From Fimbriosthenelais zetlandica (Eukaryota), in the NCBI GenBank assembly GCA_977030845.1, contig OZ365114.1:21266001-21330000 (forward strand): 64,000 bases of DNA. Reading direction: 5' to 3'. Shown here piece by piece: positions 14,264 to 64,000 of this stretch (within the stretch, counting starts at the first letter, position 1; each line of letters starts with the position of its first letter). Under the pieces are notes generated by a model, which was not told the DNA's origin, ran no database searches, and saw only the letters and a program-made list of their open reading frames with translations. The translations under genes were made by a program, and so were the position numbers.

Positions 14264-16972
<2,709 letters not shown>

Positions 16973-19203: not shown

Positions 19204-22200
19204 GTAGGAATTATTGTTGTGCTCCTTCTATTCGCCAGGAATAAACTTTATGCTTCTACACTCACCAGCTCAATTAACATTCACATTCCCGTTTCTCCAG
19301 GTGTCGGATCTTTGGCTAATAATAATGTACATGCCAGTGATGACGTAGATACTTATTAGTTAGATCTCAGTAATAAAAAACAATTGGATTTTCATAATTC
19401 ATTAATTGACGTCTGTATATTGATTGGTAAGATTAAGAATATTATATAATATAATGTCAATTTATATAAATCCACTATTTATTATATTTTTCTTTCTAAT
19501 TTGTCTATCGTAAAGTTCTGTATGATCCTATTGGGCTCTCTAGACCATTGCCTGGTGTGTTGGCAGAGAGCTGCTGTCGCCCCCTAGTGCATTAAGCGAG
19601 TTCTACTAATTGTGAACTCATGCTGCCATCTGTTGTGTAGAACCAGAATCAACTGGCGTTAGTTCAATTTACATCAACCAGGCGGCGTCTAATACTGTTT
19701 TCGAACTGATGCTGCCACCTTATGTTCAATTTTTAAGATACAAACACCTATCAGTTCAATTTTCATCCTATAGGTGGCCAGAACCATAATTGAACTTAGT
19801 CTGTAAACTGCTGAAGCGATTATTAGGATATCTGAGCCCAGATTTCAAAAGTATATTCATCCAAAGCATTTTAGATTAGAGATATTTTCACGCCGATAAA
19901 TGAATGGAATAAGTTTACCTAGCCTTAAGAATACGAAGCAATGATGATTTATTTCATTTTGCTTGTGGGTGCATTACACCGTAGCATCTCGCTATATATA
20001 CATCATGCCAATTACCCTTTCACTCATCCCCTGTGCCTGTCGCCCAATTTACAATGGTTCAATTGAAGTCTGACAAATTTATAGCACAATAAGCTTGTGC
20101 TAACTAGTGATATAATTCATGTCATTACCAGTCTAACGTGCCTTACTTCCTCAAAGCGTCTTAACAGATCAGAATGCGGACAAAAAAAGACCCCTTCACC
20201 ATCATTCACTCCAAAATTCTGGGTCAGACATGCTCTTTCTAAAAGCTTGAATGGGATGGATTTTGAATTAAAAATTATGATATAAAAAGTTCACAAGTGT
20301 TTGGTGGAAATTAATGGATCTTGCCCCCTGACTTTGACCCTGTGTGACCCTGGTAGGTCCCGGGGCTGGGAGGCATCAACAGGTGAATGACAGGTGACAT
20401 GGGAGAGGTAAAAAGAGAGGTAACTTTAGCTTGGCTGGTCTTATATAGACTACACCAGCCACCCACGGTGAACCGACCCTCTCTAGGGGGCCAGGCCTGA
20501 TAGCATCAGAATCCCAGCAAGAAGGGTCATATGAATCCGTCCCAGGAGCCTCACTCCCTCCGTCTCTTTTTACATGATCACATATTTTCACTGCAAATTA
20601 ATATTTGACATCTAAAGGATCGTGAACCCTCCGGCAGCTCTTATCCCCAATTTCAAGATAAGAATGCCGTCGATGATTTGACATAATAATATCATTGGAA
20701 AAATTATAATCAATTTTCATTATTCAAATTTTAGGGGTACATATATGTGTAAATTGGGTCTTGAATATACATCTGTTGGGTTTGGGGGCATTGCGATAGG
20801 TGGAACTGATAAAAGTTTGTTTGTTTAGGTGCTTGTCTGGGAGGATTGGATCTTCGGGGAGAGAAGGGTTTAAATGTTAGATGTCCACCTGGGTGACTGA
20901 CAGGTGGGAGATGAGAGTAGAGAGAAAGACGAGGAGTGGGTATGGATCATTACTGGCAATCTATATATACAGCCGTGATGGAATGTTTCCCCTCATTCCC
21001 AACCCTCACTCCTCTATATCACCATTGTAGGGCCTTACCATAGTGGTATAAACCCACATATCTCCACCCTTACTAGTTCCTAACCTGCCTAAATATAACT
21101 TATAATTTGTATAGAGAATTGTCTAATTCCGCCACAGTTTGAGACTAGGGATTCTATTCTGTCCATTAGGTCTTTATATTTTGAGCACATTCTGTTAGAA
21201 ATGTTAATGGAGGCTATGTGTGAATGTATCACCCCTCTAAGTGTTGTTTCCCCATGTGATATAATTCCACACGTTTTCTACGCCATTAAGAGCCTCTAGC
21301 AGGGTGACAGTTAGTCCTGCTCATAATAGGGTCTTGTTTTCCAGTTGTCCTTACAAGTTTTTACACATTCCCCCAGGGCACCTCAACCACGACAGAGATC
21401 CAGTTGAAATTAACGCGGCCGGGGGCGTGGTCGGTGGGGTAACGACAGCGGCTAAATTTCCATGACAAGGCTTCACCACGGGCACTAATCGGTGTCCATT
21501 AACACCCTTTGGACTGGGGGCCTTTAGCGTTAAATAGCAGGTCTCATTTACCCAGCAGGTAACTGGGTCCTACCTGCCAATCTCTCCATGTTGAGGGTGT
21601 AAGGTGTCTATAAGACTAGCCCCGTCTACCTCTCGTCTTTACCTTGACATAGGTGGGATGACAGGTCGTAAGAGAGTCCAGCCAAGCTAAGCATCTCTTC
21701 TATCTGACACCTTCTATCATACGTACTTACCCACCAGCACTGACATCCATTCTAAGTACTGCGTCTTAAATGGAATCTCAATTAAACTGGTTAAAGTGCC
21801 TGTCTTAATTTTCTCACTCACTTGATGTAATTACCCCAAGCCATTTTGGGTTGATGGAACTGGAATATCAGGTCCAAATATGGTGATTTTTTCTTGGTTA
21901 TAACTTCAGGAAACTAAATATTTATTATGTTCCAAATCAGAAAATTCCACAATTTCCATTGGATCCCTTCATATTTCATATGTATACATGTATCTGTCTA
22001 TTTTATCTAAAGTATTTCACTGTTTAGTGTTATCTCTGGTATAAGACCCACTTGGATATTATTATTGAAGGACCCTTTGGGGAGACATACAGTGTGAGAA
22101 CAGCTGTTTCCATGGCAATTGACGGACAATATATATAGACATATACAGGGGTATATTGGTGATAATTCTTTAACTCTTCACCTGCCTATTCTCTCGCCAA

Positions 22201-25200
22201 TACTGGACCTTGATTCTCATGGTTTCTGGGAAGGAACCTGTTGCAGCAGGACAGCTTGACCACTGGTCAAACATAGCCATTTCCTGGCCATTGGTCAGCG
22301 AGTTGACACTAAGCCAATATGAAAACAGAAGCTGTCCACAGCGTCTGCTGCACCTGCAGCGCCCCCTCCCTTCATTTCCACTCTCTCACTACCCCTTAGA
22401 TTGGAAAAAATACTATTCAAATATTTCAATTTCCATGCACATATTTTCACGAAGAAAATTCTATTAGACCACTCATGGGATTGGTGAAAGAAAGGAGCAT
22501 GTCAGGAAGTAAGGATTGACCGGAGGAATTTGTTGGTAGACCTCTTCCCCATGTCAGGCATACCTGGTATTACCATAATGTGTGTACATTACCTTAAAAG
22601 TCGGACCATGCTTTGTTGGTCTTGTAAACTTAGATACTTTTCCTGCTAAGGGAGGTCAGTGGATAACAGAAGGGTCAATGTTTTTACAGGTCACTTTTGT
22701 ATCCAAACACAGCTTCAATAATATTGTTCAGCGATATCCTCCTTCGGCCTGGATGGAGTGAATGGAACATGCTGGAGCTGACATTGATGCATTTGGTGAT
22801 TAACTTTTGCTGATTGAAAACTTACTTTTCATGCCCTGGTCGGGATTTGCTTTGCCATTTGTATGGAACTTCAGCAAGTACCTGGCTTTTAAATTATTAC
22901 TGATTGTTGGCCGGCTTCTGATTTGAATTCATTGAGAGTTCAGAATATTAACAATCTCTATCACTGTCAAAGCTGAGGAAAGTTTCCCTGAATCGGGTAA
23001 CAAATTATCCACCAGTTTTAAAAAGTAAAAGACAAATGATCGAAAAGGAAAGTATAGAATTCTCGGGATGACTTATGATCCTCGGATTTTCTTTCTGCTA
23101 TTTCATTGGAATGCAGGCAGCATGGCACAAACTGGGCCAAACTAAAATTTTACTTTTATGAAGCAATGAGTGCGAAAATTAAATTTTCCCTGCCATGAAA
23201 TCTCCATGAATAGGTGTGAGTGTTTGGCAGTTTGTCCTGGGCAGGAAAAGGCAGCAATAGTGGCATGTGACTCTTTCTTCCTCATCGGAGGAGAGGGAAG
23301 CCATTCAAATGATAATTTCAGGGTCAACACTCTTGGAAACTTGTGAATAAAACATAGGTTGACTCTGGCTGCTTCTTAACATAAGCACTCAAACACACAA
23401 GCCTCCAGCTGGTGGACATGTCAGGTTAGCTCGAGTGTTCCCCTCAATAAGGCGGCATTCCATATACAGGACAAATACTGCAATGAGGCGATAATGGCAT
23501 TTGGAGTGTTTTATACTAAAGTCTGGGTTTGTGGGGAAATATTGACCTCTTTACAGGCTCCATATTTGCCAGAGTTTCACCATTACTCCTGATCTGTTTT
23601 GGGGCGCGAACCACAAAACATCCAGAACTGTACTTTTATAACAAAATCTCCCCATTGATCTATGTGCAACATTTTTAGAATTATATAACTCCAAGGTAAA
23701 GTGAATGTGCTCTTGTCCTGGCATGGTTCCCTGGATAAGCCTGAAACCCCTCATCAAAAAATAACCTTTGATATTTAACATATTTGTATTCAACAAAATT
23801 GTCCCTTCGTCAACTAACAATTCCTAAGTATTTCATAGCATTGTTCTTATAAGCCTACAGAATGGTGGTATTTAACCTGCAGCCCTTAAATCTTCTGAAC
23901 AGGGAATCTGAGCCTCTTATTCACAATGTGATACATCCTCATTGATGCCCTGGATACAGATCAGATCAAATGTGGTTTCATTGCAAATGTAACCCAATAA
24001 ACTGATATAAGATCATTTATATTTAGACCTACTGTTTCACCTATTGACTGGAGAATACTTTTTGTTCTCAAAAAATTAAATGACTTTGTCTAACAGATAC
24101 CTGTTTAGTCAGGAGCCTGGAGAATGCTCGGAAAAAAGTTAAATCAGCATTGTTGGAGAGGGATGGGTGGAAAAAATCCTCTTTGGACTAATTACCTTGA
24201 TTTGAGATAGCCAGAATACAAGAACTGGAAAGTAGGCTGTAACTCAATACCCCCACCCCCAACCAATCTCCCCCCCTCCCTCCTCACAATATCCAGCACA
24301 AATGTTGTGGGAAGAGATGGAAAAACTAGCCAAGTTTGCTTCCTCCAGCTTGACAGTTAAGAGCAGTTTACTTGATGGTGTGTGTAGACTGTGGGTTTGG
24401 GGATGTGGGGTGCATGGTGAGGGCCTGATGGTGGCATGGGGGTTTGAAGCAGGAGAGAGGAGAAGGCTTCCTCCTACTCATCCCCTTTTACCTCTCTGGT
24501 TCCAGTTTGGTGAGTAACAGTACTCATCAGGGTGGGCAGATGGCCCTCTCCACCCTCCACTGTTTGCTTACACTGGTCGGCCTTGTGTCGCTTCACACCT
24601 CGGCACTGGGCTCATATTTAACTTGACACCTCAGTGAAATGAGTGAACATTGCAGTGTTTGCTTAGATCGGCCAACGGGAACTGATACCCCTCCTGAAGC
24701 AGGCTGGAAGCCGGCACAGGCCTGCATGGGTAGGAGCAAGGCTGGGGGCATTTGAAAAAGTGACATTTTTAATAAGGCCCTGATTGTATTTATGTGATTG
24801 GAAATGAAACCAGAGCCTCATTCTGGCTCCAATCACGTGATGAGGTCACATGGGGTAAACTCAAGGCATGATGGGTAATATTTGCCATCCCTGAGCATCT
24901 TGGGAATTAGTTTTTTTTGCAGGCGATCCTCTAGCCCTATCTGGAAATCTTAATGGCATGTAAAATTCCATGTATAATTTGAATGCATTTTAACAATGGT
25001 CGATGAAATAGTTTCGGGTTTTAAAAAGGAAAACAAAACATATATACATGTGCGTGCTTGTATATCACATTGAAAAGTATTTTCTGGTATTTTGTTTTAG
25101 CAACTGTTTGAAAGTTGAGATGTTAATAGTATTGGACTTGTTAATAGTATTTGACTGCCATGTACGTGTAGTGGCTTGACCATTAGGCGATGTAGAGGGT

Positions 25201-28200
25201 ACATTAATGTAGTCTGTACTAAGTGATGGGTGTTAAGTCCACTACTGTCAGGATGTGGTAGTTCTCCAGCCCCTGTCAGTACAATACTCGATGTAACAGC
25301 CTTCAGAGTAAGGACAAAAGACTGGTTGACAGCAAGCAGGCCTGGACTTGTCAGCTGTCTAGTTATCCATTAGGCCTTAACCAAAGGCTTGCCAAGGCCT
25401 CCTGCCAAGGCCTCCAAACTTTCTACAAATAGGAAATCTTTGAGTCGGTTTCCAGGTGTCTTTATGACTTAATCATAGCCAATCACGGCTAAATGGGCTC
25501 ACAGTGAAATGTCTGCCCCAGCATGAAAGGCTCCGTCTTAACCAAGGGCTCAGCCAAGTGAAAAACATCAAGGTTAACCAAGAAATGGCCAAGTTCAGGT
25601 TAGAGTACCAGATCCAATTATGACCTGAAAAAAGATACGTCACATACTATCATATAACTTGTATGTAACTCTCTCAAAATCTTCAGAAATGGTCAAATCT
25701 CCATTAGAAAATAGAAAAAATCACTGCTGAAAATATTTTCATTTCGGATACAAAGGGTTAAAATGAAAATATTAAAGTGTGAAAATGATTATTTTTGCTG
25801 GAGGGTAGAGGGGTTGAATTATTGATGACTTATGGCCAGGCTTCTCATCGATTCGTGTTGAGAACAAGGTTAATCTTAGCCTGGACAAGAGAATCAGAGA
25901 GCTGCTCCGCTGATTGGAGCAGGTCATACGGGCAGGGGTCGGCTTGCACGACAGCTTGCATGGGGCGGTAGGCCTCATCATAGGCTGCAGCTTCCACGCC
26001 ACCTCACCCAGGCTTGTACCAGACACACCTGGCTAAAGGTGGTCATGGTCCGTGAAACACAGTGTCCCTGGACAATTTTACCAACTGGGAGAAACTCTCA
26101 TGCCCCCTACAAGCCGTCGCATACCAATATTATCCCGAAACTTATCCAAAAGTCTAATTTATAGTCAGTATATCGACAGGAAGCTCTCCTAGCAAAAAAA
26201 GGATCTAGATGTTGATCTTGATATTATTCGTGATACGAGTTTAGATGGAGCAGAAAGTGTCCGTGGGACACTCTCATGGTGGAACATTCAGCATAAACAC
26301 ACCCAGTCTTGTACACCACCTCCTAATACAGACCCCTTGCATAAATAATTCCTCACCTTATTCATTGGCGGCGCGCTGAGGTGTGCACCTTTCTTTGATG
26401 AAGCCTCCTGCACACTAATTAGTGTCGGGATCTCAAGTGGAGCGGCCATTTTAATTATAAAAGGCTGAGGTGTTGGCCAGATTGTGTGGCGAACCCTGAT
26501 TATCTTAATTAGTTGCTCCCACTCACACTCTCTACCCCTAGAACCGACTTCTAAGTCAACAAAATCTTCACACCTTTTCTTCTCAAAATATTATCTTCAT
26601 GAAAAAATAATGATCTCCCCAAGCTGGCTAAAGTGGTTTACGTGAGACCTATGAGGAGTCAGTATTGGCGACATCCCCTGGTCCTATTTTACAGCGAAAT
26701 CTCAGATTTTTAGTATATTTTTACCTTCTCTTTAGTCATGCTTTCAGGTGAACGTGAATACCCATTACCCTGGGGGTGAATAAGGTCACAAATCTATAAC
26801 TTGGGATCAGTAATCAAAGTGTTCCCATGCAGCCAGATGTTGCCGCCAACCACAACAACAAGTTGTTGCATAATGGAAATTTCAATCTATATTTACTCAC
26901 TTCATTTGGTTGCCTGACTAACTTTTGACACGATGCCAGTCTTCTCGGGAGATGATTATTTTTTCCTCTCCTCTCCTCTTGCTCTATTTTATGATCAGTG
27001 ACATTGACATGGTGCGAGGAGAGAAGGTTATTCACCCTCTGGGCTCGTCCAAACTAAATGTAATAGGGTTTTTAACCACAAGCTTTGACATCTAGTTAGC
27101 ACAAGAATTGCCCATTAATCCATCACTCTCTCAAACAGCCTATACATATTTATAAACTGGATCACTATTACAATGATTGATCATCTAGCAGAGTGATAAA
27201 TATGTTAAACCCAATAATGCATATCTTGGCAATTTCTTTTATGAAAATATGCCCAGTCTCTCACTCCCCATGCCTTCTTCCCTGGCCCAGGCGTTTAGTT
27301 GGCAAGCCTTGAATCCAGTAATTATCCTTCCTGCCAACTTGTTGAGCCCTAGTGTCATCAGACCTCAATCCTGAAAACTTCTCCTCTCCTTCTTTTTATC
27401 ATTGAAAGCCTCAAGGGTCGTGTTAATATTTATATTTAATTACGACCGGCTAGAAATTCCCCTTGTTCCTATTGTATAGGATCCGCACACATTTTAACAG
27501 AATGCGATGTCATTTGATAGATTATAAATCACAGGGGACATTCACGATGACAAATTATTGATAATTTATTTTCCTTTTCAGATAGCATCAAGGAAAAATA
27601 ACTAACTTTACGACTGTCATGAACTTCCTTATTTGGTCCATTACCTGGACTCTTTATTGTTAGGGACCTGAATATTGAGACCCTTTTTTCGTTTGAAAAG
27701 AAAGGACCTTAAAGGGAATAAGATTTACTATGATAGCTATGGCTTTTGTTTACACTAAATAAATGTCAAGGGTTCCAGAGTGTGCTGTTATAGTAAGGTG
27801 CAAACATCTGCGAGATATTAAAAGGAAATAGGACCAGATTCCCCTCTCCGTTATTTTACCCAGTAGCGTCTCGGAAAGTGAAAGAATATAAAAATCTGGG
27901 CCTTGGAAAAACTTCTGCCAAGCTCTGGCAGGCGGCCACATGCCTGTGCAAGATAATGGTGATCTATTTCCTCGTCTCATCCTTCTAGGAAGTCTCATTT
28001 CTCGGAGACTTCCAGGAGCGGGCGCGCCCGGGCTCTGGTGGGGCCTGCTCGTGCTGGGGTTTGATAGGATTGTTCTCTTGGATAAAAGAACCAAGTTGGT
28101 GGCCAAGATAAGATTGTTACCGACTCTCAACTTGTGATAGGATGTGAAGCTGGGAAGAGACTAAAAGAGAGGAGTAAGACTGAGTGGGGCTATAGAGCTG

Positions 28201-31200
28201 CTTGGTTTGCTGGCTAGTTTCTCCTGCTTATATTGGTCTCTAATGTCCCTCCATCATCTGATTATAAGCTTTGGTTATTATCTTTGTAAAAAAAACTTCA
28301 GTTCTTAAATCAGAAAAATATTTCATAAGGTCACTAAGGTAATAGAGTTTGTATATTATATTCCATGGGTCATGCACATATATAGTCTGCCGGAAGGCTA
28401 CTACAAGAGGTCACGACCTTTAAATCCTCACCTCTCGACCTTTTGATGTTGGCATCGATTACCTTTGTGAAATTCAAGCCAAAACTTAGTGCATTGTTCC
28501 GGCGAAAAATTAACCGTCTTTGTCACGGTGTTGTTCTTAGGGATTAAGATAAAAGAGACCACATAAGAACTCTGCTTCTGGACCTAGAAGAGAAGTTGTA
28601 AATGAAACCCAGAGGTGACAGTTGAAACCACTTAACTATCTTAACTTTACACCAGTGTCACACTCCTAAACCAGACACCGTCAATCCACCCTCAGTGGTA
28701 GGAGGAAAAATAGTTTAAAACAAATATTTTGAATAAATATATTCCTTACATTGTTCCTATGAAGATAGATCAAAATCCTTTTAAAAGTCATTAAAATGAT
28801 AGACCAATCTTATAGCTTTGGTTCTGGGAATAGAAAGGGTTGAGGTGTTCCTATACTGACCACTTCTGGGGTGGACAGGTGGGTATAGGTGGGTAGCTTA
28901 ACATCTGCCTTCCTAATACCTTAGCCTACAATTTGATATCTTACAAAGGCATTAAAAAGACCCAGTGGGTTTACATGAAGACAATGGAGCTTTAAATTGG
29001 TCTTTCATGTTCTGAAATGCTGGGAAATGATACATATTCTGTTGGAAATCCAACGTCCTGTCCAGACATATGGTATGATTAATTTTGATAATTATATCAG
29101 GCCTATACGTTTGTTTAATGCAATCTGTAATTTCGGCCTGTACGATCTGTAATATTTATGCAATTTAAGTATACTATAAGGAATATTTTATTAAGAATAT
29201 TAAAAAGATATGTTGCTATATATACATATGTCATTGCTTTTCATTGCCCCATCAGCTACAAAATAATATCTGTGAACAGGCCTTCCTGTTTATCATCACC
29301 CTTTATAAGCCTATTGTCTCCGAGAGTGGAATTTCAAGTGTGTAACAGTGGAATATTACTATGGCGTGTCACTGCCACTTTGTTGCACTTTTATACATCC
29401 ATAATGCTGGGGACAGATGCTCCCTTTTACTCCTTGAAAAGGCATGTGTATTTTTCAAAGGCATATGTTTCTGAGTCATTGAAGACTTTAATGCATACTC
29501 ATCAGTTTGCTGCTTCTCCGGTGGCGATTGAATTTTTCATGCACATTCCCGCCATTGTCTCACTACATATAGATCATTGGAAATAGGTTGTGTTTTTAAC
29601 ACGAGCAGATGATGAAGGTGTCTGACTGCAAATCCCTCGTCCAAGCATCTCGCCAAGCTTTTGTGTTTCATCATAATCTAGGCCTCCCTCAAAGTACTGT
29701 GATTTGGTGGTCTTTCGCCGCAAATTATGATTGATAATTTTTCATGGGCCATCTTGTTGCAAGCGAGTACTTAGGCTCTCCCCCTCACATCCCACTCTTT
29801 CTCCCATTCTCTCTTCCCTCATGAATTCCCACAAAGAATCAGCGACAAAAACAGATAATTCCAGCCAAGCAATTGCAGCGTTGGGCCCCTCGCTATTCAT
29901 CAAAGCATTTTGCATTTTAATCAGAAAAGTAAGTTACATAATGCCTCAATTATTCATGATCACCGTGGTTCATTTTCAAAGCAGCCTAATCTCAGTTTGG
30001 CCATTAACAGTTGGGCAGATTATGTATTAGAGATTACAGAAATATTGAAATGCCGGAGCTTGGAGGCGGGCATGCGGTATAGCGCGCTTACTCTGGCCTT
30101 GCCAGGTACCACTGAAAGCATTTCTTTTCTCTTTCCCAGCCACCCCATCAATTATTTAAAACTTGTGTCAGCTTTCAACGCGATTATCAATTATGTTTCG
30201 TTACCGAAGATTAAGAGCTCAAGCGGTGTGCGGTTTTAAAAATGCAGGCATCTTTTGCCACGTTTTGCTTCCATAGACAATATGCCTTTTGGATGGAGGG
30301 ACTTAAGTTGCACAGAGCCATGCAGGCTGCCAGTGGAAATCCCTCACCATGGCCTTTTTCAGCCGAGGAGCACTGTAGGTCTCTGAGGCAACCCTACCCC
30401 TCAGTCTACTTCACACAAAAGCTGACATATTCCCTGTGTCATTTAAGAGTTCATATTTTGTTGCTCCTCTCCCCTATAAGCTTTCTAATGTCAACGCTTC
30501 TCTCCCCCTCTGTTAATGGCTTAAATCCCTCAGTCTCCCTCTATAAGCTCCAGGCACTCAAGGCTTTAGAAGTCAGGCTTAAAAATTCACACCTGCAAAC
30601 TTTGTTGTATGAGAAGTTAAAAGGTGGGTGTTGGAAGGCTTATTCCCCGTGGAGAAGTGGCCCGATCAGGCTTCAACATTGTGAAGATACTTGGGCTGGT
30701 GCACTGCAGTTCACGCCTGCTGAAAGGCACCACATTGCAGGTGTTTTATTTATTATTTCCAGGAAGGAAATTGTGACAAGAGTATGAATAGACACAGTTG
30801 TATAAAACAAGAAGTTCTAAAAAGCTATATTCACAAATATCTCAATGCAACTCTCATTCGGATCGGGATGTTAAGAGATCATCTTCCAATGAATATCTAA
30901 TTGAAACTTTTTGAAACTTTTCAAATGTTCATATCAATACTTCTTTATATCACTCTTCTTTCTGTCAGCTGACGGGGCCAGAAGTCTAAGCTCTGCCTTA
31001 ACCAACTTCTGCCAAATAAAAAAGTTCCCTAATTGGGCATTGTGATGGCATTGCAATACATGACCAAAAGAACATATTGTACATTGTAGTATCATGCAGA
31101 TACATGTGTATGTTCTTGTTATCCATTGTAATGGAGGGCCTTTCAGTAAGTCATTATAATTGAGGACCTCTTTATAAGTCATTGTAATGGACACCATCTC

Positions 31201-31237
31201 TGTAAGTAATTATAATGGATCTTTGTTGTGATTTCAG
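19204..31237 (+). other. MPDU1: MPDU1 intron 3 (12,034 nt)
   Basis: Donor TTCAG|gtagga and acceptor atttcag|TACATATGG; the phase-2 join restores YPF-S-TYGEAIF, the conserved MPDU1 segment. Confidence 0.88.
19576..19780. promoter_or_regulatory. Cluster of five CTCF-like motifs (candidate insulator/boundary)
   Basis: Minus strand: GCACTAGGGGGCGAC (19576-19590), CACAACAGATGGCAGCA (19621-19637), CATAAGGTGGCAGCAT (19709-19724). Plus strand: CAACCAGGCGGCGTC (19675-19689), CCTATAGGTGGCCA (19767-19780). Compared by eye with the CCACCAG(G/A)(G/T)GGC(A/G)C consensus. Confidence 0.55.
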
Positions 31238-31442
31238 TACATATGGAGAGGCCATATTCCTGTTGATCCAGACCTGGGTGGTGGCAGTCCTGGTGCTCTA
31301 CTATACAGGCCGTCAGGCTATGGTGGCGGTATACTCGGCCGTCCTTGTTGCCGTTCTTGCCTTCCTCCTCTCCCCTGCAGCCCCTGCTGATCTCATCTGG
31401 TTCCTCCAGACTAGCAACATTATCAACATTATAATTGCCCGG
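31238..31442 (+). CDS. MPDU1: MPDU1 exon 4 (remaining C-terminal exon(s) lie beyond the window)
   Basis: 205-nt exon encoding STYGEAIFLLIQTWVVAVLVLYYTGRQAMVAVYSAVLVAVLAFLLSPAAPADLIWFLQTSNIINIIIAR, ending CGG|gtaagt. The expected next segment (..QA..N..NGHTGQLSA..) was not found up to 64000. Confidence 0.9.
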
Positions 31443-34400: not shown

Positions 34401-35565
34401 CATCATCTTTCTTTGTTCACTCAAATGAATGGCTTTTGTGAAGGAGCATTTTTCGAGCAATCAATATTATAAAGTATGTATTCAATGCGGGTCTGTCCAT
34501 CTTTGTGCCTTCCTCTTAGCCCTTTGTCAGGCCTTCACACATGACCTTGTATTTCCCTATAATCAAATAAGAGATGAATAGGAGAGTAACCAATAATTAT
34601 TTATATATGTGCACATATTGTTATCTCGATTTATAATTGGCCAGTTCGACAATACTGATCAATTTCTGCTCCTTTGCTGCCTGTCTCTATGGTCAGATTC
34701 CATGTACTACTTGCTCCTCTTAATGCCTCCATATAAGAGACATTTCCCTATACTTCTTACACCTTCCAAACTTAATGAACAGCAGTCCGCTAACCGGTCC
34801 TATTTTGCAATTGTATGAGCAGAAAATGTTTGCACAACAACTCATACAGAAATACCTATTAAATACTATCTCTCCATGATATCTACATTAATTATATAAT
34901 CATAATTATTTAACATAATATTCTAAGCACCCACAGTTTCATTGTTTCAGCCCTATTGGGTTCACTCAGTACGGTAGGGCCCCACCTTACTCATTGTCTG
35001 TGCAGAATGGTGTAATTTATTCCTGGATAAGCCGTTATCAAACGTAAGGAGTTAAATTTAAACGCCAGGTCTCTCGCTGCCTGCCCTCTGCCCTGGTACA
35101 AGTTAATTTCTAGCTTTCTCGTCTTTCTCCTCCCGGGCCCGTAGTTTGATTAATTTGTTACTTGATTCCATTTGTCATATCACATTTGCGTCTTTATTTG
35201 TCCGTCAGCCACACACAACGCCGTAACTGCACAAAGTTTAATTGGTTGACTCCGACAAAAAAAATCTTCAAATAAAATGACATCTGTTCACAAAAAATTC
35301 ACTGGATTTCCCCACTTACGAACAAAGGTTGTGCATAGGTCCCTTCCTAGGTAACTTCAAGGTTAATTGGCTGTTTTGTTATTTGCTTTTGATCTACTTT
35401 TTATTATGCAATAGATCCGTCTTTGGCTGAACCGGATTGTAATGGAACCAAGGAAATTGATCTAGCATGCATATCTGCAAGGTTTTATCTTGAAAATTCT
35501 GCACTTGTTTCATCTTATCAACAATTGGCTATTGGATCAGCTATATTTTCCCTCACAGCCCTCAC

Positions 35566-53900: not shown

Positions 53901-56900
53901 TCCAACTATTTGGAGAGCTTATGTATCAAGAACAAGAGGGAGTAGGAAACCAACTGGGCCTGATTGCATGACTGCTTTGGATAGAACACCAACCTTCTTG
54001 ATTTGCTTTTTCTTGAGGAAGAAATAAATGAGTTAAATGAGTCCTTCTGAGAACGTGTAACTTAGAGGGTTTTATGTATTTGTGGATGTTCTAGGTATGA
54101 AGGTTGTTATTGACCTTGTTCTAATCTAACTGTGCAGGCATGGGAGGATACTGGGGAAGCCACCTGGTAATTAACCTACCTCCTATCAACAACCTGATAT
54201 AAGGCCTGTGCATTTCTTGCTTGGACGATGTCAGCGATTCGCGACTATTCTCAGAGGAACCATTGGCGTCGTTGTAGCGACTGTGAACGGCTTGTTTTGG
54301 TGAGAGATAAGGGACGGCTGGGTGCCGGGATCGCCATGATTGGTGACCAACATCCCGCCTGGAGTAGCTCAGACCGAGAGCTGCTCAGTGAAGCGCAAAG
54401 GATTGTGTGGCAAAACAGTTCCAACGCAACACTGATCTGGGCTTTATCAGGTGAAACAAACGGGTGGGGAGCATTGCAAGGGGACAGGCAGGTTTTAGGC
54501 TTGCATTATCATTGCTGGGTGTAGTCAAGCAGAAGTGATGTGAGGTGGGAATGGGTACATAGAATGTCTATGCTCAGCCACGTGTCTCTGCCCTCATCGC
54601 TGGATGGACAGTGTACACCCCCACCGCCCTGGCCACTACACCCCCACCACTGCCGGTCTCACTGCGTCTGCATCGCCTAGCCCACGACCATCGCTATTGT
54701 TCATGGGTTCAGAGGGACACAGGGCATGGAGTGTGCCATACACATTATGCCTGTCACTGGCAATGTGTCTTGGTGTCAATTTCACCTGGTCTCCCCCCGA
54801 CTAGAAGAGAACAAGGTCATGGGGCCATCCCGTAACATCCATCAAGACCGCCCATCACAAATGACACTTTTTGTTTCCTGCATCAAGACAAATTACATCA
54901 AGTTTGCCGGCGAAAGCTTGAGAGTCCTCATCAGAAGCACTAGAAAACTCATTTAGTGGTGGCCAGTTAAACCACTAGCAGGGCTTCGAGTGCTCCTTCC
55001 CTCCCTCAGCCTCCCAGAGAATGGTGCGATAAAATGAGAATACCCCCACCATCAATGTGATATTCTCTTGTCCTCATCAAAACATCAGCCATGCTCATTA
55101 AACATTGACAAATTAAAGGAGATAAAATAACTCCAACACCACTATCAAATTATTCCAGAAAAATTGCACCTCATTGAAGCCGTATTGGTGTAAATGGGAG
55201 AATTGTAGAGTGGAAAGCCATGCCATCAGTCCCGTATGAAAGGCACTTAGGCTCTGATCTGCCAAGGTGGCTGTTGTGTTTACAATTACCTAATGCCAAC
55301 GCTAATAGAGACAAATTCCTTTATGGCATCCAATAATTAACAGCGTGCCGTGAATTAGCCCATGAATGTATCTCTGCATCCCCTGAAAACAATCGTTGTT
55401 GCCGATTTCATTCTGGATATTAATGAGCTCTGCGGAGGCCATGGTATAGAATTTGGAGAGCAGAGTTATTTCATAACACTTGCGACGAATGGGAGGAAAG
55501 CAGCTGGTGCGGAAATTTGTCGAGACACCTGTAATAAGATGAGATCAGGCTCATTGTGGTTAGGATGCGTTTATTATTCTCGCTCCCTCCTGTCACAAAG
55601 TGGTCGCCCATTCGCTACACTCGCTGTGCCTGTTTTTAACCCATTTTACACGGCTTTGGCAGGGCGCAGCAGTTTTTGAAACCAAATGGCTGCTTGAAAT
55701 GTGAAATTGCCTCATCTTTTGTCCCTCTGTTATCGTGGATCAATTCTACATTGCTCTTTCTTTCGCATTAAGTTTGGACTGGGAGACTGGGTGTTATTCT
55801 TTCATTAGGAGTGTGGGGAGGTTCCTAACTCCTTAATAAGGCAGCGAGGATGCATGCTTGCGTTATTGATCCGATAGAAAGAATACAAACTAGAGAGATC
55901 CAACTAATTACATGTATTATTTTCTTTATCCGCAATAAAGTTAGTACTTTCTGCAAGTACATGCAGTACATATTATATATTTACTGTATTTCATCTGATT
56001 ATTTCATACATCCAATTTTACTGTTCATAAATTTAAAAAAAGAACAGGAATGTATTTTTTCGTCAAATATTTTAACTACAGGGATTAAAAACCTTTTTGT
56101 AGAATTTTCTTTATAGTATCATCTGTTCTGGACTCGCAACTTGGGAAAAGTTTCAATTGACGTAGATCCTGGAGTTCTATATTTATTTAATCCCCTGCGA
56201 ATCAGTCATGTCTGCGGGACCTCATGATATAGTGGGGAATGGCAGTCTATGCGATAATGTTTAAGACCAAAACAGGACTTTTACAGCTGAATGTTATCAA
56301 CGTCTCCCACAAACGGCGACTTAGCTCTCATCTCGGCTGATCCTCTCTCCCCCTCTCTCACTCGCCGCTCTCCGCTGCTGGATTCCACCGTGGCTTCTGA
56401 AGCCAGCGTGCCCAGTGAGAAAGCCAGTGATTGCCAAGCCCTGTGCTTCTCTCCACATCCCCCTTCTTTCCCTTCACTCCTGTTGACAGTCGGCCAGCGT
56501 CCATAGTCAACTTTGCTGGCGAGTTGTTCCACGCCAAACTTGGTGTGATTGGTGCAAGATGGGCTTAAGTTGAGTGAATAAGTTGGAGAGAGATGGGATT
56601 AGGCTGATGAGTCGGGCAGGCCTGCCTCCTGGCACGTTCCAGGCTTCAGCCTTCCTTCTCCTGACCAGCCTGGGATAGAGAGTAGAAAGAGAAGGTCTTT
56701 GTCCTCACATTACAAACACTGTGGCGGCCTGGTCGTGAAGGTCCCCTGAGGAATCAGGAGGGCAGATGGACTGGCGGTCACTGTGGCACGGACCTGTCCC
56801 CCACCACCTCACACTTGCCCTCCTCTGCTTCCAAGCTGATTTGCTGGTATTATTTGATGAGATCTCTTGGCGATTTTTCCTCCCATCCTCCTGTAGCCCG

Positions 56901-57039
56901 CTTTATTTTCGATGCAAGAGCACGACCAGGCAAGCTAACCTATTACCTCCGTTGACCGTCAGGCTCATGGGCTCTTGACCCATGGTCAGGGCGATATTTT
57001 GTTTAATTAACAGGTCAGGTTAGGATACAAAATTGTTTT

Positions 57040-57360
57040 TGGTCGCTCAACGCTGACGCACATGCAGACGCATGTGCCGGTTGAGTATTCATTACAGAGC
57101 ACGATAGGGGGCACACTTATCAGTAGCTATTCATGACATTCCACTGGGACGCTGTCGTACGTCCTCCGACACTGACATCGTCAGAGGAACATGATGTAAG
57201 CGGTAGGGTCAGGATTGGAAGACCGTTATCGGACAGACGCCAGATGCCGACACGCGCATGCGCCCACCGGAAACTGATTAGGGCAGTTCGTTCATCAGTA
57301 CGAGAATAAATGAGAAAAGAACAGCCTGCTGACGTAAAGTCACTGGGGCGAATTTCTCGT
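57040..57360. promoter_or_regulatory. Intronic CpG-rich promoter-like element
   Basis: Roughly 30 CpGs in about 320 bp in a CpG-poor neighbourhood. Perfect NRF1 palindrome GCGCATGCGC 57254-57263, adjacent ETS ACCGGAAA 57266-57273, reverse CCAAT near 57213 and TGACG half-CRE sites near 57054 and 57331. Confidence 0.6.
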
Positions 57361-57699
57361 GGTTACTTTACTTTATACACGGGGAAGATTTATTGTAACT
57401 GATAAAATACTGCTCAAACTCTACCATAAGTTCAATTCAAATCTCCATAGAACTCGCAACTCTTAATATCACATCTATTATGTTTTAATTTGGGTCAAAT
57501 CAATCTGTACTTTTTTAAAGCAGCTACAAACTAGAATGCCTCCCTTGATATTTCCATTTATTGAATGAAAAAAAAATAGAATGTTGTTTGATGCACTCAT
57601 GGTATTTGTCGGAGAAATTCTTCCCACGCCCCTTAATTCAGCTCTTGTGGCTGCTATGAAGATGAGTGGAAACTATATGAACTCCACCTCCTCCTTACC

Positions 57700-57736
57700 A
57701 CCCTCCCCACCCTCCCCACCCTCCCCAAACCCTCCC
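57700..57736 (-). repeat. (ACCCTCCCC)x4 tract; G-quadruplex-forming on the minus strand
   Basis: 9-bp unit at 57700, 57709, 57718 and 57729; the minus strand reads (GGGGAGGGT)n with at least four G3+ runs and 1-nt loops. Confidence 0.8.
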
Positions 57737-60700
57737 ATCCACCGTACTTCATACACCAGTCTATAGAAGACCCAGCAGCGTGCGGCCCAACTGCATTGAC
57801 GATTAAAGTGTTGCTTTTAAGACGCTCCCCATTATGGATCTGTGGGCTTTTTAACAATGCAGCCACTTCTCTGCTTAGGAGCAGCCATTGAAAAGCTGAC
57901 ATTGAAGTGACTCAGTTTATTGAATTGCAAAGTAAGAAGAAGAAGGGGGAAAGAAGATGATGAAAACGCTGGGGAGGATGGATGGGTGTGCACTGGGGGT
58001 ACATGCACTGATAAAGAGAAGCTCTAGATGTATAAGACATTTGGGGGTGCCCTCTCCGCCTCACGCTTTTCCCCTCTCCGCAGGATCCAGGGTAGGCTAC
58101 TTAAAAGTAAGGCCTAGTTGGAGGTCAAGGGCCCAGCTTTTGTCTATTTTACTCTCTCCCTTGTTCAGTTTCTCCCTCTGGCTTCATTTGCTACATCCTG
58201 ACCTGATGGACCACTTTACCCTCACTCACGAGGCTTCCACTGTATCCAAGTGGCCCGGCACAAGTACAGAGGTGCTTCTGGGTCTGAGAAAAAAGTGGAA
58301 GTCTCAAGATCACTCTAGATGCTGTCTTGAAAAGAAAGACCTGAGATAAAAGTGGGAGGGATATGTAGATTGCCCTGGGTGGGCCTCACTGAAAACACAC
58401 TCAGAGCTCTTACAGACAATCGGAATACAGCGCAAAGCCTCCTAAAGAGTTTCTTTCAAAACAAGTTTCTAAATTTCTGCTGTATTTGCCCAGCAGGCAT
58501 GCTATTTTAGTCATTCCGCTTGAATGTCTTGCTGGTATCTTAGCCTTCATCACTCTCAAATGAGTGATGCTTCAAGGTAGTTCTACTCTCGGTGAACAGT
58601 GAGAAACCAAGGAGGGGTTGTGCCTACCAAAGCGGCTGAGAACCCTGTATACCTGTTTTGACCTCTTCATTTCGATTTACTTTCAACGAGAGGCAGTTGG
58701 AGGCGCGCCATTTTGATCCTTTGGGTATATGAAAAGAGTCTTTGATCCTTGCACTCATTGACCCTTGTTCCTGTCATGGATCGGTTTTAGCAAGTTTTGA
58801 GGGCTGAAAAATATGATCAAACGAATCAGTATCTTCTGTTTTTGTCAATGCAAAATAGAGCGTCATTTGAGGCAACAAACCAAGCCAGGGTTGGAAGTGA
58901 GTCTGAAAATTGGAAAGAAAGTGGCTAAAAAAAATATTACTCAGATCTACAAGTGATGTTTTCACCATGTAGCCCTCGCTGAATGCGACTTACGTTAATA
59001 TGATTGACGTTTGAAGTGAGCAAAACATTGGACTCTTTATGCAGCTGAGCTTTATTGCTTTTGACTCTCAATTTACATTTTTGCACTAGTGCCAAAAGAG
59101 ATTTCATCGGCAGCTTTAGCATCTGGTCAAAACGTTGCAACTATGTATGATACTGTTGCATATAATGATATCTATTTGAAATTAATTATCTTTGAAGATA
59201 TCATCTTGTGCTCCAGGATGCACTCGTGACCTAAGAGCTGTTCACTTGAGCATCCCAGATTGCATGCACTGACATCACTGATTGCTGATATAAAGCCAGG
59301 ATCTACACAACTCCCTCACACTCCACAGCACTGCCAAGTCTGGATAACTGACTCCACTGATTATCTATTAATTAACAATGCAGCCTTTTGGCAAAGTCAC
59401 AATGGCCCTTTTGTCCAATGTCATGTGGCCCGGCCTTGCCTTATACAATACCAGTACAGGGATACCCTATTCGAGCTAAGTGGGGCCTGCAGAAGCATCT
59501 TGGTAGTGAGGCAGCCCGACAAATTGTTCCATGGGGAAAGTCAACTACAGGCAAGCCACAGAACGTATAGCCCTTCTCTGACAATAGATACTGGAAACTG
59601 GGCAGATTTCAGTCCATTGTGGTTGTCAATAGGGAGAGCTTTCATGGTTTTAAACTGGCCATTGTGTCAAAAGGACTTAAGCCAGGAGTGGGACTGGGCG
59701 CTGCCTGTCAGCTACCATTATGGCAGTGAGATTATGATGAGCTGGTGGGGGGATTTAGGCCTACTTAGGCCTCCATATGTTTGTGGCTGTCATTCTCCAC
59801 CTACTCTCAAGCTAATCACATCACGCCAGCCAGGCGTTATAAACATGCGGCTATTTTCCCCTGGTCATATCCTAACTAAGCTCCTAATGCGTTGTTGGAC
59901 TGATTTTTAATCCATAGGTCACCATTATAGTGTTACCTAAGTCAGGCATAAGTTACCATTAGACTAATGGGTAAATTAGGTGGAATCCCCCAATTATCAT
60001 TAACTAGTTGAGTGAGGGATATGCTACTTGTAATCGCAATCCAATATGTGTCACCATCAATTCTTATGCTATAGCATCATTATTTTTTTCAGTTTGCATG
60101 TTTACCTCGTACGCGAGAAATCTGAGTAAAATAATAATATTCCTCTAGCTGTAGGAATAGTTGTCCACTGGAGGAGGTAGTGCCCTTTTCTAACCATACA
60201 GGGTCAGTGGCCAACTGAGTTGATAAGCCAGGGAATATTTATTCGTGACTAAGGCAAAACTTGTGTCCGGATAGGAGGACATAGATGGATAAGCCTCAGG
60301 TGTTATTGATCGTCTTGTGGGACAGCGCGATCGGAAGATTGAAACACACCCCTAACCGCAACTTGGAATAAATTAGCGCCTAATCCACCGCCAGGGTGCC
60401 GTGTATTTAGGCCACAGACGATGCCTTTCACCAACGGGAAATAAGGGCTGAAAGGCACAGCACGGCAGGCACTGGCACGGCAAGATTGTTGCCAGAAACC
60501 TGGGCTTGCCCTTGCAGGGGCAGCTGAGGCCCTGGCTTCCTGTATTATCGCCCTGGTGTGAAAGCAAGGTGTGGACACACAATACATGCTTTTCACGCAA
60601 ACATCTGCAAGGAAATGAGCAGGATTACGGGTATTGGCGACAACAGATTACGTCGCCAGCCCGGCAACCGGCACCCAATGAAAAGAGTCCAGAAAGGGCT

Positions 60701-63700
60701 GCCGCGGGGCGGCTCGGGAAGGACCCAGATGTGGCTGCGAGGATCAGGTCGAGCGCTTGGGCCATTCACATTGCTCCTACTTCAATCAGCTTCCTCCTTC
60801 GAGAGCCATAATAAAGAGCTGCTCGACGAGTGGACTGGTCAGACCTGGTCAGTCCAACTGGTCATCTCTCAGAGGCTGGGCTGACTTAACACGACCACTG
60901 GACCCTCACTCAGGCCAATATACAACATGCCATTAGACACACACAAACCATCAAGCCCCCCACCAGCCCCCCTTGTCCCTCAGCTCCTCCTAAAGCTGCC
61001 CACTTTCTATGGAGTGACCATTGGAGTGGTATTGCTCCCCTATTGCCCATCCTTCTCCACCTTGGTGGCACCAAGGTGGAGAGGATCAGGTGGAGTGGTA
61101 TGGGACAGGAATGTTAATGTCCTCTACCCCGTCCAGACCCCAAAATATGGCTTAAAGTACCTTGAGTGGCATACTGAATTCAGTATTGACTTTTCTTATA
61201 CTGTTTCTCATTTCAGTTTGCATATATCCCAAAAGATGCCTCAATAAATCTCTAAAAGTGTTTTGTTTCACTATGTGCCTCATTGTGTATAAACTTTGCT
61301 GTTTGGTCACAATGTTAAGCACTTATTTGTCCTCTCCGAGAACTAAATGCAGCAGCAATGGCAGAACCGGGCTGAAGTTGATAATGTGTTGAATAATATT
61401 AGCTCGAGATGTATGAAACTGTTGAGCCATGACCTAGTTACTATAAGCACAGATAGCATTGATTTATTACAACTTCTATGAATCATTGTCCTCGTATTCA
61501 TGCATGTCTATTATGTCTTTTGGGAGTCGGCCCGCATATATTCCGTTCACCCAATTCATACATCAATCAAACACATCCTGATACAATGCATCACCTTCTG
61601 AAATTGTTTTGATAGATATCACGGAGCACACAACAGAGCATGCTATATGTTTCACCAGCCCAGCTATGAGTTAATGTAGGCACGGAGGTTGACCACCAAC
61701 ACCTTATAGATATACATTAGAGGTGCATTTACCATGCGCCCATCCACTCCCTCTGTAAGTGGCCATGGTCCTGTCGCTTACATAGCAGAACGTTGCAAAT
61801 GGCGCCACGTCAAAGGAGACGTCACAAAACGTCATGAGAGCATTTGGCCAGGCTTTGGCGGGCATTGAGGTTTGGCGCTATAGGTCTGCGTACTGTTTAC
61901 TCGCTGCACATTTCTCATGGCAAATTAATGGTTGCGGACATGCCACCTGTGAGCTGCGGGCTTCAGGATCACCCCAATCCAGGTGATTCCTGTCATTTAG
62001 ATGCAAATCCCTAACCCGCCGTCTTTCAGCGCCTCGAGAAGCAAGTGTTTACTCTTGCTCGGCGGATGAATACATCTGCCTAATGCCTGCTGCCCTAGCA
62101 ACCACTGCGCGCCAAAAAGAATGTGCATTAGGCCCCGTTACCACGTTAGGCCCCCCTTGTTCTGACAAGGCGCTTTGCTCATTTACATATTAATAGTTTC
62201 AAAAACCTCCCCACTTTGGAAACGTGGCCATTGTTAGTTAAAGGTGCGACAAGAGGGGAAAGATTATCTCCTGGTAAAAGTGCTTACTGTTTCATTGCTT
62301 TGGTAATGGTTCAAATCCGAATGGATCATCTCATTGATGTGATTATTTCATTGGAGGAGGAGGGCTTGGGAATTTGGAGAGGGGAGCTACCCCACAAGTG
62401 GAGGATCGAGCATACATGTTAAAAGATGAAAAGACCCATGGTAATCTAATGAGGAGCCGCAAAAGATAATAAAAATTCACCTGCTTTATCTCGCTCACGA
62501 TCCATGTAGGTGGTCCTCTCGGTTAGTTTTATTTATTTTTTGCCCCAGCTGAACTCTTTCGCCTTCCCTCAATGGACAGCTCTGACAGGTCGAGAGGGAG
62601 ATCTCACTTTTCTTTCATAGAAGAGGCTGCTTAAACTTTAAGGAATTCTATGCATGTAATACCACATGAGAATTGGTGGTGGTTTGGGTGTTAGGAGTTC
62701 CTTTCTTATGGAGGTCGTGTTTTTCAATTCCAAATTTACAGGAAGACAATCTGAAAGGCGAACTTTCACGTCATGATTGAATACTGGAAGCAAAACGTCT
62801 CTTGTTACACTCGTTTTCAGGCTATGTCTATCAAAAAGCATCTGAAAAAAAATCAAGGTGTTTGTGACTTATTCCTGTCATTATCGAGGGATTACTCCCT
62901 GATTTAGCTATCAGGGGTTACATAACATGATGAATATTTAGACAGGGTGTGGTATATATTCAAGCCATATCATTAATATAATGACATCAACAATAGGATA
63001 TGCCATGTACAGGACTCTAACAAGATGTAAGATATCATGACTGGTCCTGTCACCTCCAGTAGGAACCTCTATGTTTGTGACCTGCCTTTCTCCTCCAGGG
63101 ACTTCCATTATTATAACACCGACCTTTATTTAATCTCTTTTCCCCACCACCCCTGTCATTGACAGTCATGTGAGGCATACATTTTTTGTTCGCCCTTACT
63201 GGCCACCTTACCCATTGTCAGCTGACCTGTCCGCCTTCCGGTTCCTGCCTGGCACACACTCTTTGCCTCGGAGGCTGGAGTTTTATTCATAAGAAAAGGC
63301 CAGGTTGTCACCTCTTAGCTCTGCTTGCTTCCTTCTCTATTGACCAGTTTCTCTAATAACTGAGGTGTCATTGAGAGAGGGGGGACTCCTTGAGTGGAAT
63401 ACAGGTGTCGCTGATGGCCTGGGGGCATCTTTTTTTCCACGGCCTGGTCACTTGGGGTGCTGGAGGCTGGCTCGGGGGCTCTTTATTAGAGTGAAGGTGG
63501 CTGATTTTTGCACCTTTTTAGGGCAGCATTTTCCTATGACTGTTCAGCATCGATCGATTCAACCACTTCAGCAGTCTATGTCATCTGCTCCCTATCCCCC
63601 TCCTGACCCCCACCCCCCGGCTTACCCCGACCCCCACAGAAGCCACTTTGCCTGCCTTATGATTCTTTCATCAAATGCCTGAGGAGCTTGTGAATGCTCC

Positions 63701-64000
63701 CTGGCCCTGGGCGTTTCTAGCCCCTGATCCTCATATTGACCACTTTGTGTCTGAATTCTACACACACAAAAGGCAGTCTTTGCAAACAGTTCACTTCTCA
63801 AGACCAGAGATGAAGGCCCGGTAGAAAGCCCCACCTGATTACAGAGACACCATACCTTGTCATTATTGCTATATAGAGAGGTGAAACTCCCCCATTCAAT
63901 GACCCATTAAAACCAACTGAGAAGAACCGAAATTACTGTTTGCTCGACTATTAGATAGGCTTATTATTGTACCTGCAGGTCAGGCCAGAATTAATTAAAT

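Follow-up and report, generated by a model that had tools for sequence, protein, structure and literature searches.

A SoxB1 gene beside an MPDU1 gene with giant introns in Fimbriosthenelais zetlandica: a candidate genomic regulatory block

Genomic regulatory blocks with bystander genes were reportedly described by Kikuta and colleagues in 2007. The vertebrate SOX1, SOX2 and SOX3 genes are located in gene deserts. Neural and stem-cell identity depend centrally on SoxB1 (Sox2-class) genes, and the origin of their very large deserts is little understood. Long introns in the bystander gene are among the features expected by definition in genomic regulatory blocks, examples of which are Isl-Scaper and Otx1-Ehbp1 (Irimia et al., 2012, PMC3514665). 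In the model of Touceda-Suarez et al. (2020, PMC7530604), ancient regulatory blocks were dismantled, which gave rise to vertebrate gene deserts. Throughout jawed vertebrates, mpdu1 flanks sox15/sox19, of which sox15 represents an ohnologue of the SoxB1 genes (Ogita et al., 2021, PMC8244163). The initial annotation of the DNA studied here had stated that human MPDU1 adjoins the SoxB1-derived SOX15, and this adjacency is documented for jawed vertebrates (PMC8244163).

The window analyzed is a stretch of 64,000 nucleotides of the Fimbriosthenelais zetlandica genome. Like genomic regulatory blocks, the locus places a developmental transcription factor gene beside a housekeeping gene that is unrelated to it and whose introns are exceptionally long, and the MPDU1-Sox pair is adjacent in a very distant lineage too. 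It differs in that two molluscan orthologues of MPDU1 lack long bystander introns. Such blocks are defined by conserved intronic elements and enhancer activity. We regard the MPDU1-SoxB1 pair as a well-anchored new candidate for a genomic regulatory block with a bystander gene.

MPDU1 and the compact cluster to its left

The MPDU1 exons were read directly and spliced in silico (Table 1). Five intact exons, all with AG/GT splice borders, encode a product of 253 aa. PQ-loop matches are found in exons 3 and 5, and exon 4 matches exon 4 of scallop MPDU1 at the DNA level. The protein aligns end to end with named MPDU1 proteins at ~50% identity. The Ylistrum MPDU1-like protein is 50% identical over 232 aa, and many named arthropod MPDU1 homologues are similar. 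Two PQ-loop repeats, a length of ~250 aa and the full-length alignment to orthologues identify the predicted gene as MPDU1 (SLC66A5, PQ-loop family).

The coding sequence of 762 nt is spread over 68 kb. Introns 1 to 4 measure 836, 299, 12,034 and 54,110 nt, the last two being long introns of the kind expected in a bystander gene. The length given for intron 3 in the initial annotation was exact, and its lower bound of 32,558 nt for intron 4 corresponds to the part inside the window. The remaining exon, which had been expected to the right, was found 21.5 kb beyond the window and completes the protein.

A compact cluster lies upstream of MPDU1. It contains an Arm-repeat gene, an MFS transporter gene and an aldehyde dehydrogenase gene, in all of which the exon-bearing open reading frames (ORFs) are less than 1 kb apart. 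This spacing agrees with an earlier count of 32 small introns (89-836 nt). The cluster ends with the aldehyde dehydrogenase gene, which is head-to-head with MPDU1, and the two ATG codons are ~626 nt apart.

Table 1. Positions of features in and to the right of the window. C21 marks positions on the contig; all others are window positions.
Feature	Position	Strand	Remarks
Aldehyde dehydrogenase, first coding exon	16796..17146	-	From the ORF list; Aldedh Pfam matches on downstream exons
MPDU1 exon 1	17773..17869	+	ATG at 17773, GT donor
MPDU1 exon 2	18706..18771	+	AG/GT borders
MPDU1 exon 3	19071..19203	+	First PQ-loop, PF04193 E=3.4e-9; also from profile scan of own genome
MPDU1 intron 3	19204..31237	+	12,034 nt, single-copy, CpG-poor
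MPDU1 exon 4	31238..31442	+	AG/GT borders, in frame
MPDU1 intron 4, part inside window	31443..64000	+	First 32,558 nt; whole intron ends at C21:21351552
MPDU1 exon 5, outside window	C21:21351553-21351813 (extended window coordinate 85553-85813)	+	Stop, PQ-loop match
SoxB1, single exon	C21:21520907-21521899	-	PF00505 HMG box 96.7 bits, PF12336 SOXp 61.2 bits

SoxB1 and the intervening non-coding DNA

To the right of MPDU1, SoxB1 is the first gene that could be detected. It is located 169 kb past the MPDU1 stop, and 190.9 kb separate it from the end of the window. The two genes are tail-to-tail, as human MPDU1 and SOX15 presumably are. In vertebrates only a few kb separate the pair and the MPDU1 gene is compact, unlike the distance and the gene size found here. 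The best named relatives of the SoxB1 protein are Platynereis SoxB1, Solemya SoxB1, Lingula Sox-2 and Priapulus Sox-3-like. Together with the domain content, and without a tree, these relatives place the predicted single-exon HMG gene in the SoxB1 subgroup. No HMG gene is nearer, and no other transcription-factor-like gene was found in the interval. SoxB1 and MPDU1, a trans-dev gene and a functionally unrelated neighbor, are consecutive detectable genes. Two further single-exon HMG genes, both SoxB2-type, are located at C21:22.33 and 22.38 Mb, 0.8 Mb further right. No HMG box was found in the window, in agreement with the initial annotation, which had seen no HMG-box ORF there and had predicted a target to the right of the window or inside intron 4, perhaps a SoxB1 gene; a gene of this kind was found to the right. 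A contig from ENA (483 kb) carries a SoxB1 that is 78% identical.

Between the beginning of MPDU1 intron 3 and the 3' end of SoxB1, a span of ~236 kb is non-coding except for MPDU1 exons 4 and 5. It adjoins the compact housekeeping cluster, in which introns are shorter than 1 kb. The 264 kb examined contains no N, and repeated DNA makes up less than 1% of it in self-comparison. Searches against the 447-Mb genome covered 52 of the 66 kb of intron 3 and intron 4 sequence. The two halves of intron 3 matched only themselves and contain no internal repeats, and 40 kb of intron 4 gave one 62-bp match, one match of ~200 bp and nothing else. The same search picked up a young repeat in the desert (L016:1-372) with at least 40 copies in the genome, which indicates that it can reveal repeats. 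The giant introns are essentially single-copy in the genome.

Nothing resembling a further gene was detected between MPDU1 and SoxB1. No Pfam family was found in any of the 29 longest stop-free frames (≥146 aa) across the 236-kb interval, in line with an earlier remark that the introns lack transposable element ORFs. No Rfam family was found in the window or in the 80 kb that follow on the right. Coding-like ORFs do not cluster on one strand, and codon-usage scores of desert ORFs are below those of known exons, with a classifier that separates the two weakly. Small-exon genes and non-coding RNAs in the 169-kb desert may be missed by the ORF, Pfam and codon-usage screens. Stop-free frames of at least 150 aa are in excess, with 24 observed and 6.7 expected under a second-order Markov null. 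Apart from those of SoxB1 itself, the interval contains no transcription-factor signature peptides. A WFQNRR hexapeptide at extended coordinate 143,468 (- strand) was taken as a chance match, as it lacks a homeodomain context.

GC content is 0.41-0.42 and heterogeneous in the giant introns and the desert, and 0.38 in the compact cluster. The mean observed/expected CpG ratio is 0.40 in intron 3, 0.50 in intron 4 and 0.53 in the compact part. Five CpG-island-like blocks are found in intron 4 and none in intron 3. Two motifs are enriched in intron 4. The Sox core CATTGTY occurs 42 times against 24 expected, and TAATTA 46 times against 27 expected; neither count was reached in any of 150 simulations. 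TAATTA is also enriched in the desert, but not in the compact part. No motif enrichment was found in intron 3. The many CpG-retaining blocks described in the initial annotation are only partly borne out, and motif density has modest support, in intron 4 only. A strict CTCF consensus, which is a vertebrate one, had no match in the 264 kb.

Conserved non-coding blocks were seen only within ~6 kb of SoxB1. Near the gene, a contig of a related species aligns in collinear blocks with 72-91% identity and exact runs of up to 88 bp, and one SoxB1-proximal non-coding block is common to Capitella. These alignments indicate that conserved non-coding elements exist at the locus. A sequencing run of a relative (40 Mb, mostly tiny contigs), compared at 80% likeness, leaves window positions 28450-34449 uncovered, including exon 4. 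Three apparent matches to distant species were set aside. Two are located 12 kb 3' of SoxB1: one to Priapulus (E=4e-8), dropped because the Priapulus segment is microsatellite-like, and one to Owenia (E=0.02), which is insignificant. The third, between intron 4 and Solemya (E=0.007), was treated as chance.

A candidate SoxB1 landscape and its alternatives

We propose, with a probability of about 60%, that the giant introns of MPDU1 have become part of the SoxB1 regulatory landscape, forming a genomic regulatory block in which MPDU1 is the bystander. We infer that the intronic DNA is conserved and regulatory, and that it acts on SoxB1. Distal SoxB1 enhancers would be located in the desert and inside MPDU1 introns 3 and 4, and would loop to the SoxB1 promoter. 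Because enhancers spread over the interval are proposed to contact this promoter, selection would oppose breakpoints, large deletions and transposon insertions throughout it. Such selection would keep MPDU1 and SoxB1 linked. The locus offers a compact (~236 kb), nearly repeat-free candidate landscape in a spiralian.

MPDU1 could instead be a passive neighbor. The adjacency would then be inherited, the giant introns would have grown neutrally in this lineage from decayed old insertions, and the SoxB1 landscape would stop before MPDU1. The compact molluscan genes, with introns at the same positions, are consistent with this, as are the low CpG content of intron 3 and its lack of motif enrichment. 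However, 66 kb of intron is tolerated here although introns of the adjacent genes are below 1 kb. The introns are single-copy and almost devoid of recognizable repeats, yet other parts of the genome have active young repeats. The composition and motif content of the introns match those of the adjoining desert. On balance we consider a passive neighbor rather unlikely.

It is more doubtful still that the introns are long owing to unannotated transcription units, such as a small-exon gene nested within them or a long non-coding RNA resembling vertebrate SOX2-OT. ORF and Pfam screens do not reveal short exons or non-coding RNAs, the long stop-free frames exceed the Markov null, and the five CpG-island-like blocks of intron 4 are possible promoters. 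Against this stand the lack of Pfam matches in the 29 longest ORFs, the absence of Rfam families, of a same-strand cluster of coding-like ORFs, and of transcription-factor signature peptides other than those of SoxB1. The regulatory DNA could also serve a different target, either MPDU1 itself or the two SoxB2-type genes, which are single-exon HMG genes on the same contig. This is very improbable, as SoxB1 is located between the introns and the SoxB2-type genes and is the nearest developmental regulator, and 66 kb of intronic control is more than a transporter-like housekeeping gene normally requires. An assembly artefact, in which exons 1-4 were misjoined to exon 5 or foreign DNA was inserted, is hardly credible. 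Nothing specific points to it, although the available reads do not bridge an intron of 54 kb. The absence of N over 264 kb, the uniform composition, and an exon 5 that completes the protein in frame on the right strand, with no nearer copy, argue against it.

MPDU1 and SoxB1 in other genomes

In the scallop Ylistrum, MPDU1 introns at the same positions are ~1 kb long, and the whole MPDU1 gene of Solemya measures 4.6 kb. Since both molluscan genes are compact, giant introns are not an old feature of MPDU1, and any intronic enhancers would be lineage-specific. The MPDU1 gene of Tribolium is located in a dense region and has no Sox neighbor. No HMG gene was found within 10 kb of the MPDU1 genes of Solemya, Ylistrum, Tribolium and Xenentodon (mpdu1b), and no called gene was found within 10 kb of SoxB1 in Capitella, Owenia, Lottia and Priapulus. 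Outside vertebrates, the MPDU1-SoxB1 linkage was seen only in the Fimbriosthenelais zetlandica genome. We found no report of an MPDU1-Sox linkage outside vertebrates in the literature searched; supplementary microsynteny tables, such as those of Irimia et al. (2012), may list it.

An ancestral MPDU1-SoxB1 linkage is nevertheless plausible, because mpdu1 adjoins sox15/sox19, a SoxB1 ohnologue, across jawed vertebrates. A more far-reaching and tentative possibility is that the pair is an ancestral bilaterian regulatory block. The annelid would then display the state before duplication, in which a single SoxB1 gene has a large landscape on its 3' side and MPDU1 is the bystander. Following the two genome duplications in vertebrates, MPDU1 would have persisted only beside SOX15, and its exons would have disappeared from those copies that turned into the SOX1/2/3 deserts. 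A single SoxB1 with a bystander fits the pre-duplication state in the model of Touceda-Suarez et al. (PMC7530604). In vertebrates, MPDU1 is retained beside one ohnologue only, SOX15. The main text of that paper mentions neither Sox nor MPDU1, and the MPDU1-SoxB1 locus shares no non-coding elements with the vertebrate SOX deserts. If the ancestral block is real, the origin of the SOX1/2/3 deserts would become datable, and a protostome locus would serve as their reference. A protostome SoxB1 shares its neighbor MPDU1 with vertebrate SOX15, so the ancestry of Sox landscapes becomes testable by synteny across phyla.

The vertebrate synteny also includes fxr2 (mpdu1-sox15/sox19-fxr2; PMC8244163), and the present locus resembles it in that the gene directly next to MPDU1 belongs to the SoxB1/G ohnologue group. 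A genome scan with FXMRP1_C_core, run without a working control, gave no match. A scan with KH_9 located Fmr1 4.09 Mb to the left. Unlike vertebrate fxr2, this Fmr1/FXR homologue is not adjacent to the Sox gene but is located 4.35 Mb from SoxB1.

MPDU1 and the genes around it

MPDU1 extends over 68 kb, of which 762 bases are coding. Its last exon was traced from a weak PQ-loop match at C21:21351559 (C21 is contig OZ365114.1), and the exon set is complete. The product has 253 residues, with PQ-loop repeats encoded by exons 3 and 5. Over residues 12 to 243 it is 50% identical to an MPDU1-like protein of a scallop, and its alignments with many named MPDU1 homologues are similar. Introns 1 to 4 measure 836, 299, 12,034 and 54,110 nt. 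The anatomy of the giant introns is confirmed: the intron lengths in the initial annotation were correct, and the intron reported there as longer than 32 kb is 54 kb in full.

To the left of MPDU1, three genes form a compact cluster in which exon-bearing ORFs are spaced by less than 1 kb. The aldehyde dehydrogenase gene and MPDU1 are arranged head-to-head. A second, divergent MPDU1-like gene is located at locus L005. It shares the exon borders of MPDU1 exons 3 to 5, with 38-58% identity per exon. Its matched exons are separated by a few hundred nucleotides only, indicating that the genome has a compact MPDU1 paralogue beside the giant-intron copy.

Positions of features in the window (C21:21266001-21330000) and on C21. 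Extended positions carry the window numbering rightward into C21:21330001-21530000 (loci L007 to L026)
Feature	Position	Strand	Remarks
Arm-repeat gene	left 17.7 kb of window	+	compact
MFS/SLC22-like transporter gene	left 17.7 kb of window	+	compact
Aldehyde dehydrogenase gene	left 17.7 kb of window	-	compact
MPDU1 exon 1	17773-17869	+	splice borders AG/GT
MPDU1 exon 2	18706-18771	+	splice borders AG/GT
MPDU1 exon 3	19071-19203	+	splice borders AG/GT; PQ-loop
MPDU1 exon 4	31238-31442	+	splice borders AG/GT
MPDU1 exon 5 (last)	extended 85553-85813	+	good acceptor, frame open to stop; PQ-loop
Tandem array	35568-35906		about 7 copies, 30-bp unit, 86% identity
Low-copy element, intron 4	extended 74968-75167 (L008:968-1167)		about 200 bp
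Dispersed repeat, mid-desert	C21:21420001-21420372 (L016:1-372)		372 bp
Stop-free frame	extended 153919-154368		150 aa, across two loci
HMG box of SoxB1	C21:21521501-21521707	-	full-length, uninterrupted
SoxB1 ORF	L026:910-1899		330 aa from first plausible ATG
Conserved non-coding element	C21:21525133-21525189 (L026:5133-5189)		about 3.2 kb upstream of SoxB1
MPDU1-like gene (L005)	C21:23152131-23155271	-	1.87 Mb rightward
FMRP KH0 (KH_9) match	C21:17172831-17173158		sole match in genome

SoxB1 as the neighbour of MPDU1

The initial annotation had proposed a target gene, perhaps a SoxB1 gene, to the right of the window or inside intron 4, and had seen no HMG-box ORF within the window. A genome-wide HMG-box scan bore this out, with no match inside the window and an HMG box to its right. 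The ORF containing this box has HMG_box and SOXp domains, and its best named relatives are Platynereis SoxB1, Solemya SoxB1 and Lingula Sox-2. The protein relatives of this DNA point to an annelid. SoxB1 and MPDU1 are convergent, with 169,093 nt between their stop codons.

In this desert between the two genes, a search for long domain-bearing ORFs and for transcription-factor signature peptides found neither, and a weak classifier saw no grouping, on one strand, of ORFs whose codon usage resembles that of exons. Small-exon genes or non-coding RNAs may be present. Starting at intron 3, about 236 kb of non-coding DNA extends to SoxB1, broken only by exons 4 and 5 of MPDU1.

In vertebrates from cartilaginous fishes to mammals, mpdu1 flanks sox15/sox19, and sox1, sox2, sox3 and sox15 are treated as ohnologues of a single ancestral soxB1 (Ogita et al., 2021, PMC8244163). 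By our rough estimate, the MPDU1-SoxB1 adjacency would arise by chance with a probability of no more than a few per thousand, even for genes that share a chromosome. Since the prediction of this adjacency also preceded the discovery of the Sox gene, its simplest reading is inheritance from the bilaterian ancestor. The Fmr1/FXR homologue adjoins SOX15 in vertebrates, whereas here it is 4.35 Mb from SoxB1, and Fmr1 is an unlikely candidate for a SoxB1 bystander. We found no publication on MPDU1-Sox linkage outside vertebrates in the literature searched.

Contents of the long introns and the desert

On self-comparison, less than 1% of the 264 kb formed by the window and its extension was repeated, and this is essentially a single tandem array with a 30-bp unit, the sole sizeable one in the introns. 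Both halves of intron 3 matched only themselves in the whole 447-Mb genome. The 40 kb of intron 4 searched in the same way gave only a 62-bp match and the low-copy element. The best genomic match of this element (74%, E=8e-31) is at C21:21607194-21607405, beyond SoxB1, and eight weaker copies are found elsewhere. The same search recovered at least 40 copies of the mid-desert repeat (94-99% identity), so it can see repeats, and young repeats exist in this genome. This young dispersed repeat probably begins in locus L015 and overlaps the stop-free frame listed in the table.

The 29 longest stop-free frames between the start of intron 3 and SoxB1 match no Pfam family. The window and the next 80 kb have no Rfam match, and N is absent throughout the 264 kb. 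Together with the low repeat content, these results make repeats, nested known genes or an assembly gap poor explanations of the long introns. Stop-free frames of at least 150 aa are 3.6 times commoner at extended 19204-254909 than in second-order Markov simulations (24 versus 6.7), and none of those tested has a Pfam match. Patchy composition, or remnants of very old coding sequence, may explain the excess.

GC content is patchy in the introns (0.41-0.42), as in the desert, and 0.38 in the compact cluster. The CpG-retaining blocks ascribed to both long introns are only partly confirmed: intron 4 has five island-like blocks, intron 3 is CpG-poor (o/e 0.40) and has none, and the desert has 23. 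Counts of 15 motifs were compared, as an exploratory test, with second-order Markov simulations run on 5-kb blocks. In intron 4, the Sox core CATTGTY (42 observed, 24 expected) and TAATTA (46 observed, 27 expected) were in excess, each count being reached in 0 of 150 simulations. TAATTA was also frequent in the desert (108 versus 72 expected). No motif excess over the simulations was seen in intron 3 or the compact cluster. The 264 kb contain no copy of the strict vertebrate CTCF core CCASYAGRKGGCR; a CTCF-like module at window 19576-19780 consists of near-matches only.

A candidate regulatory landscape of SoxB1

In a related species, SoxB1 lies on a Logan contig together with 6.4 kb of its 5' flank and 4.3 kb of its 3' flank. 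The protein is 93% identical and the coding sequence 85% identical. In the flanks, alignment is confined to collinear blocks (72-91% identity), which make up 36-47% of the flank and include exact runs of up to 88 bp. The alignment shows the expected footprint pattern, seen only adjoining SoxB1. The conserved non-coding element upstream of SoxB1 is shared with the close relative, with the 88-bp exact run near it. It is also recognisable in Capitella at an equal distance from SoxB1, and contains an ATTGT Sox-type core. It is a candidate deep annelid SoxB1 enhancer.

Four features are expected where a bystander gene is part of a regulatory block: a trans-dev gene with a non-developmental neighbour, long introns in the bystander, conserved elements within those introns, and enhancers that act on the neighbour (Irimia et al., 2012, PMC3514665). 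The first two are found at the MPDU1-SoxB1 locus. The most likely explanation is that introns 3 and 4 belong to the SoxB1 regulatory landscape (probability about 0.6). The main rival, in which the introns grew neutrally in this lineage beside a neighbour that was inherited, seems to us rather unlikely. Points that call for caution are that two molluscs have a compact MPDU1, whose introns 3 and 4 are about 1 kb in scallop, and that the dense surroundings of the gene in Tribolium include no Sox gene. The locus is a well-anchored candidate for a known kind of system, the regulatory block with its bystander gene. It also fits a model of ancient blocks that were duplicated, lost the exons of the bystander and became deserts (PMC7530604); the main text of that study does not mention MPDU1 or Sox genes.

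The SoxB1 Logan contig (L028/L029; ERR14368249/ERR14368248) is 11.7 kb long. This is close to the 11,908 bases of the longest record in X1, a run of 40 Mb in 324,790 contigs and the only one in which the conserved piece of the relative was present. If X1 is ERR14368249 or ERR14368248, a contig of this length would be odd for random low-coverage data and may reflect targeted sequencing.
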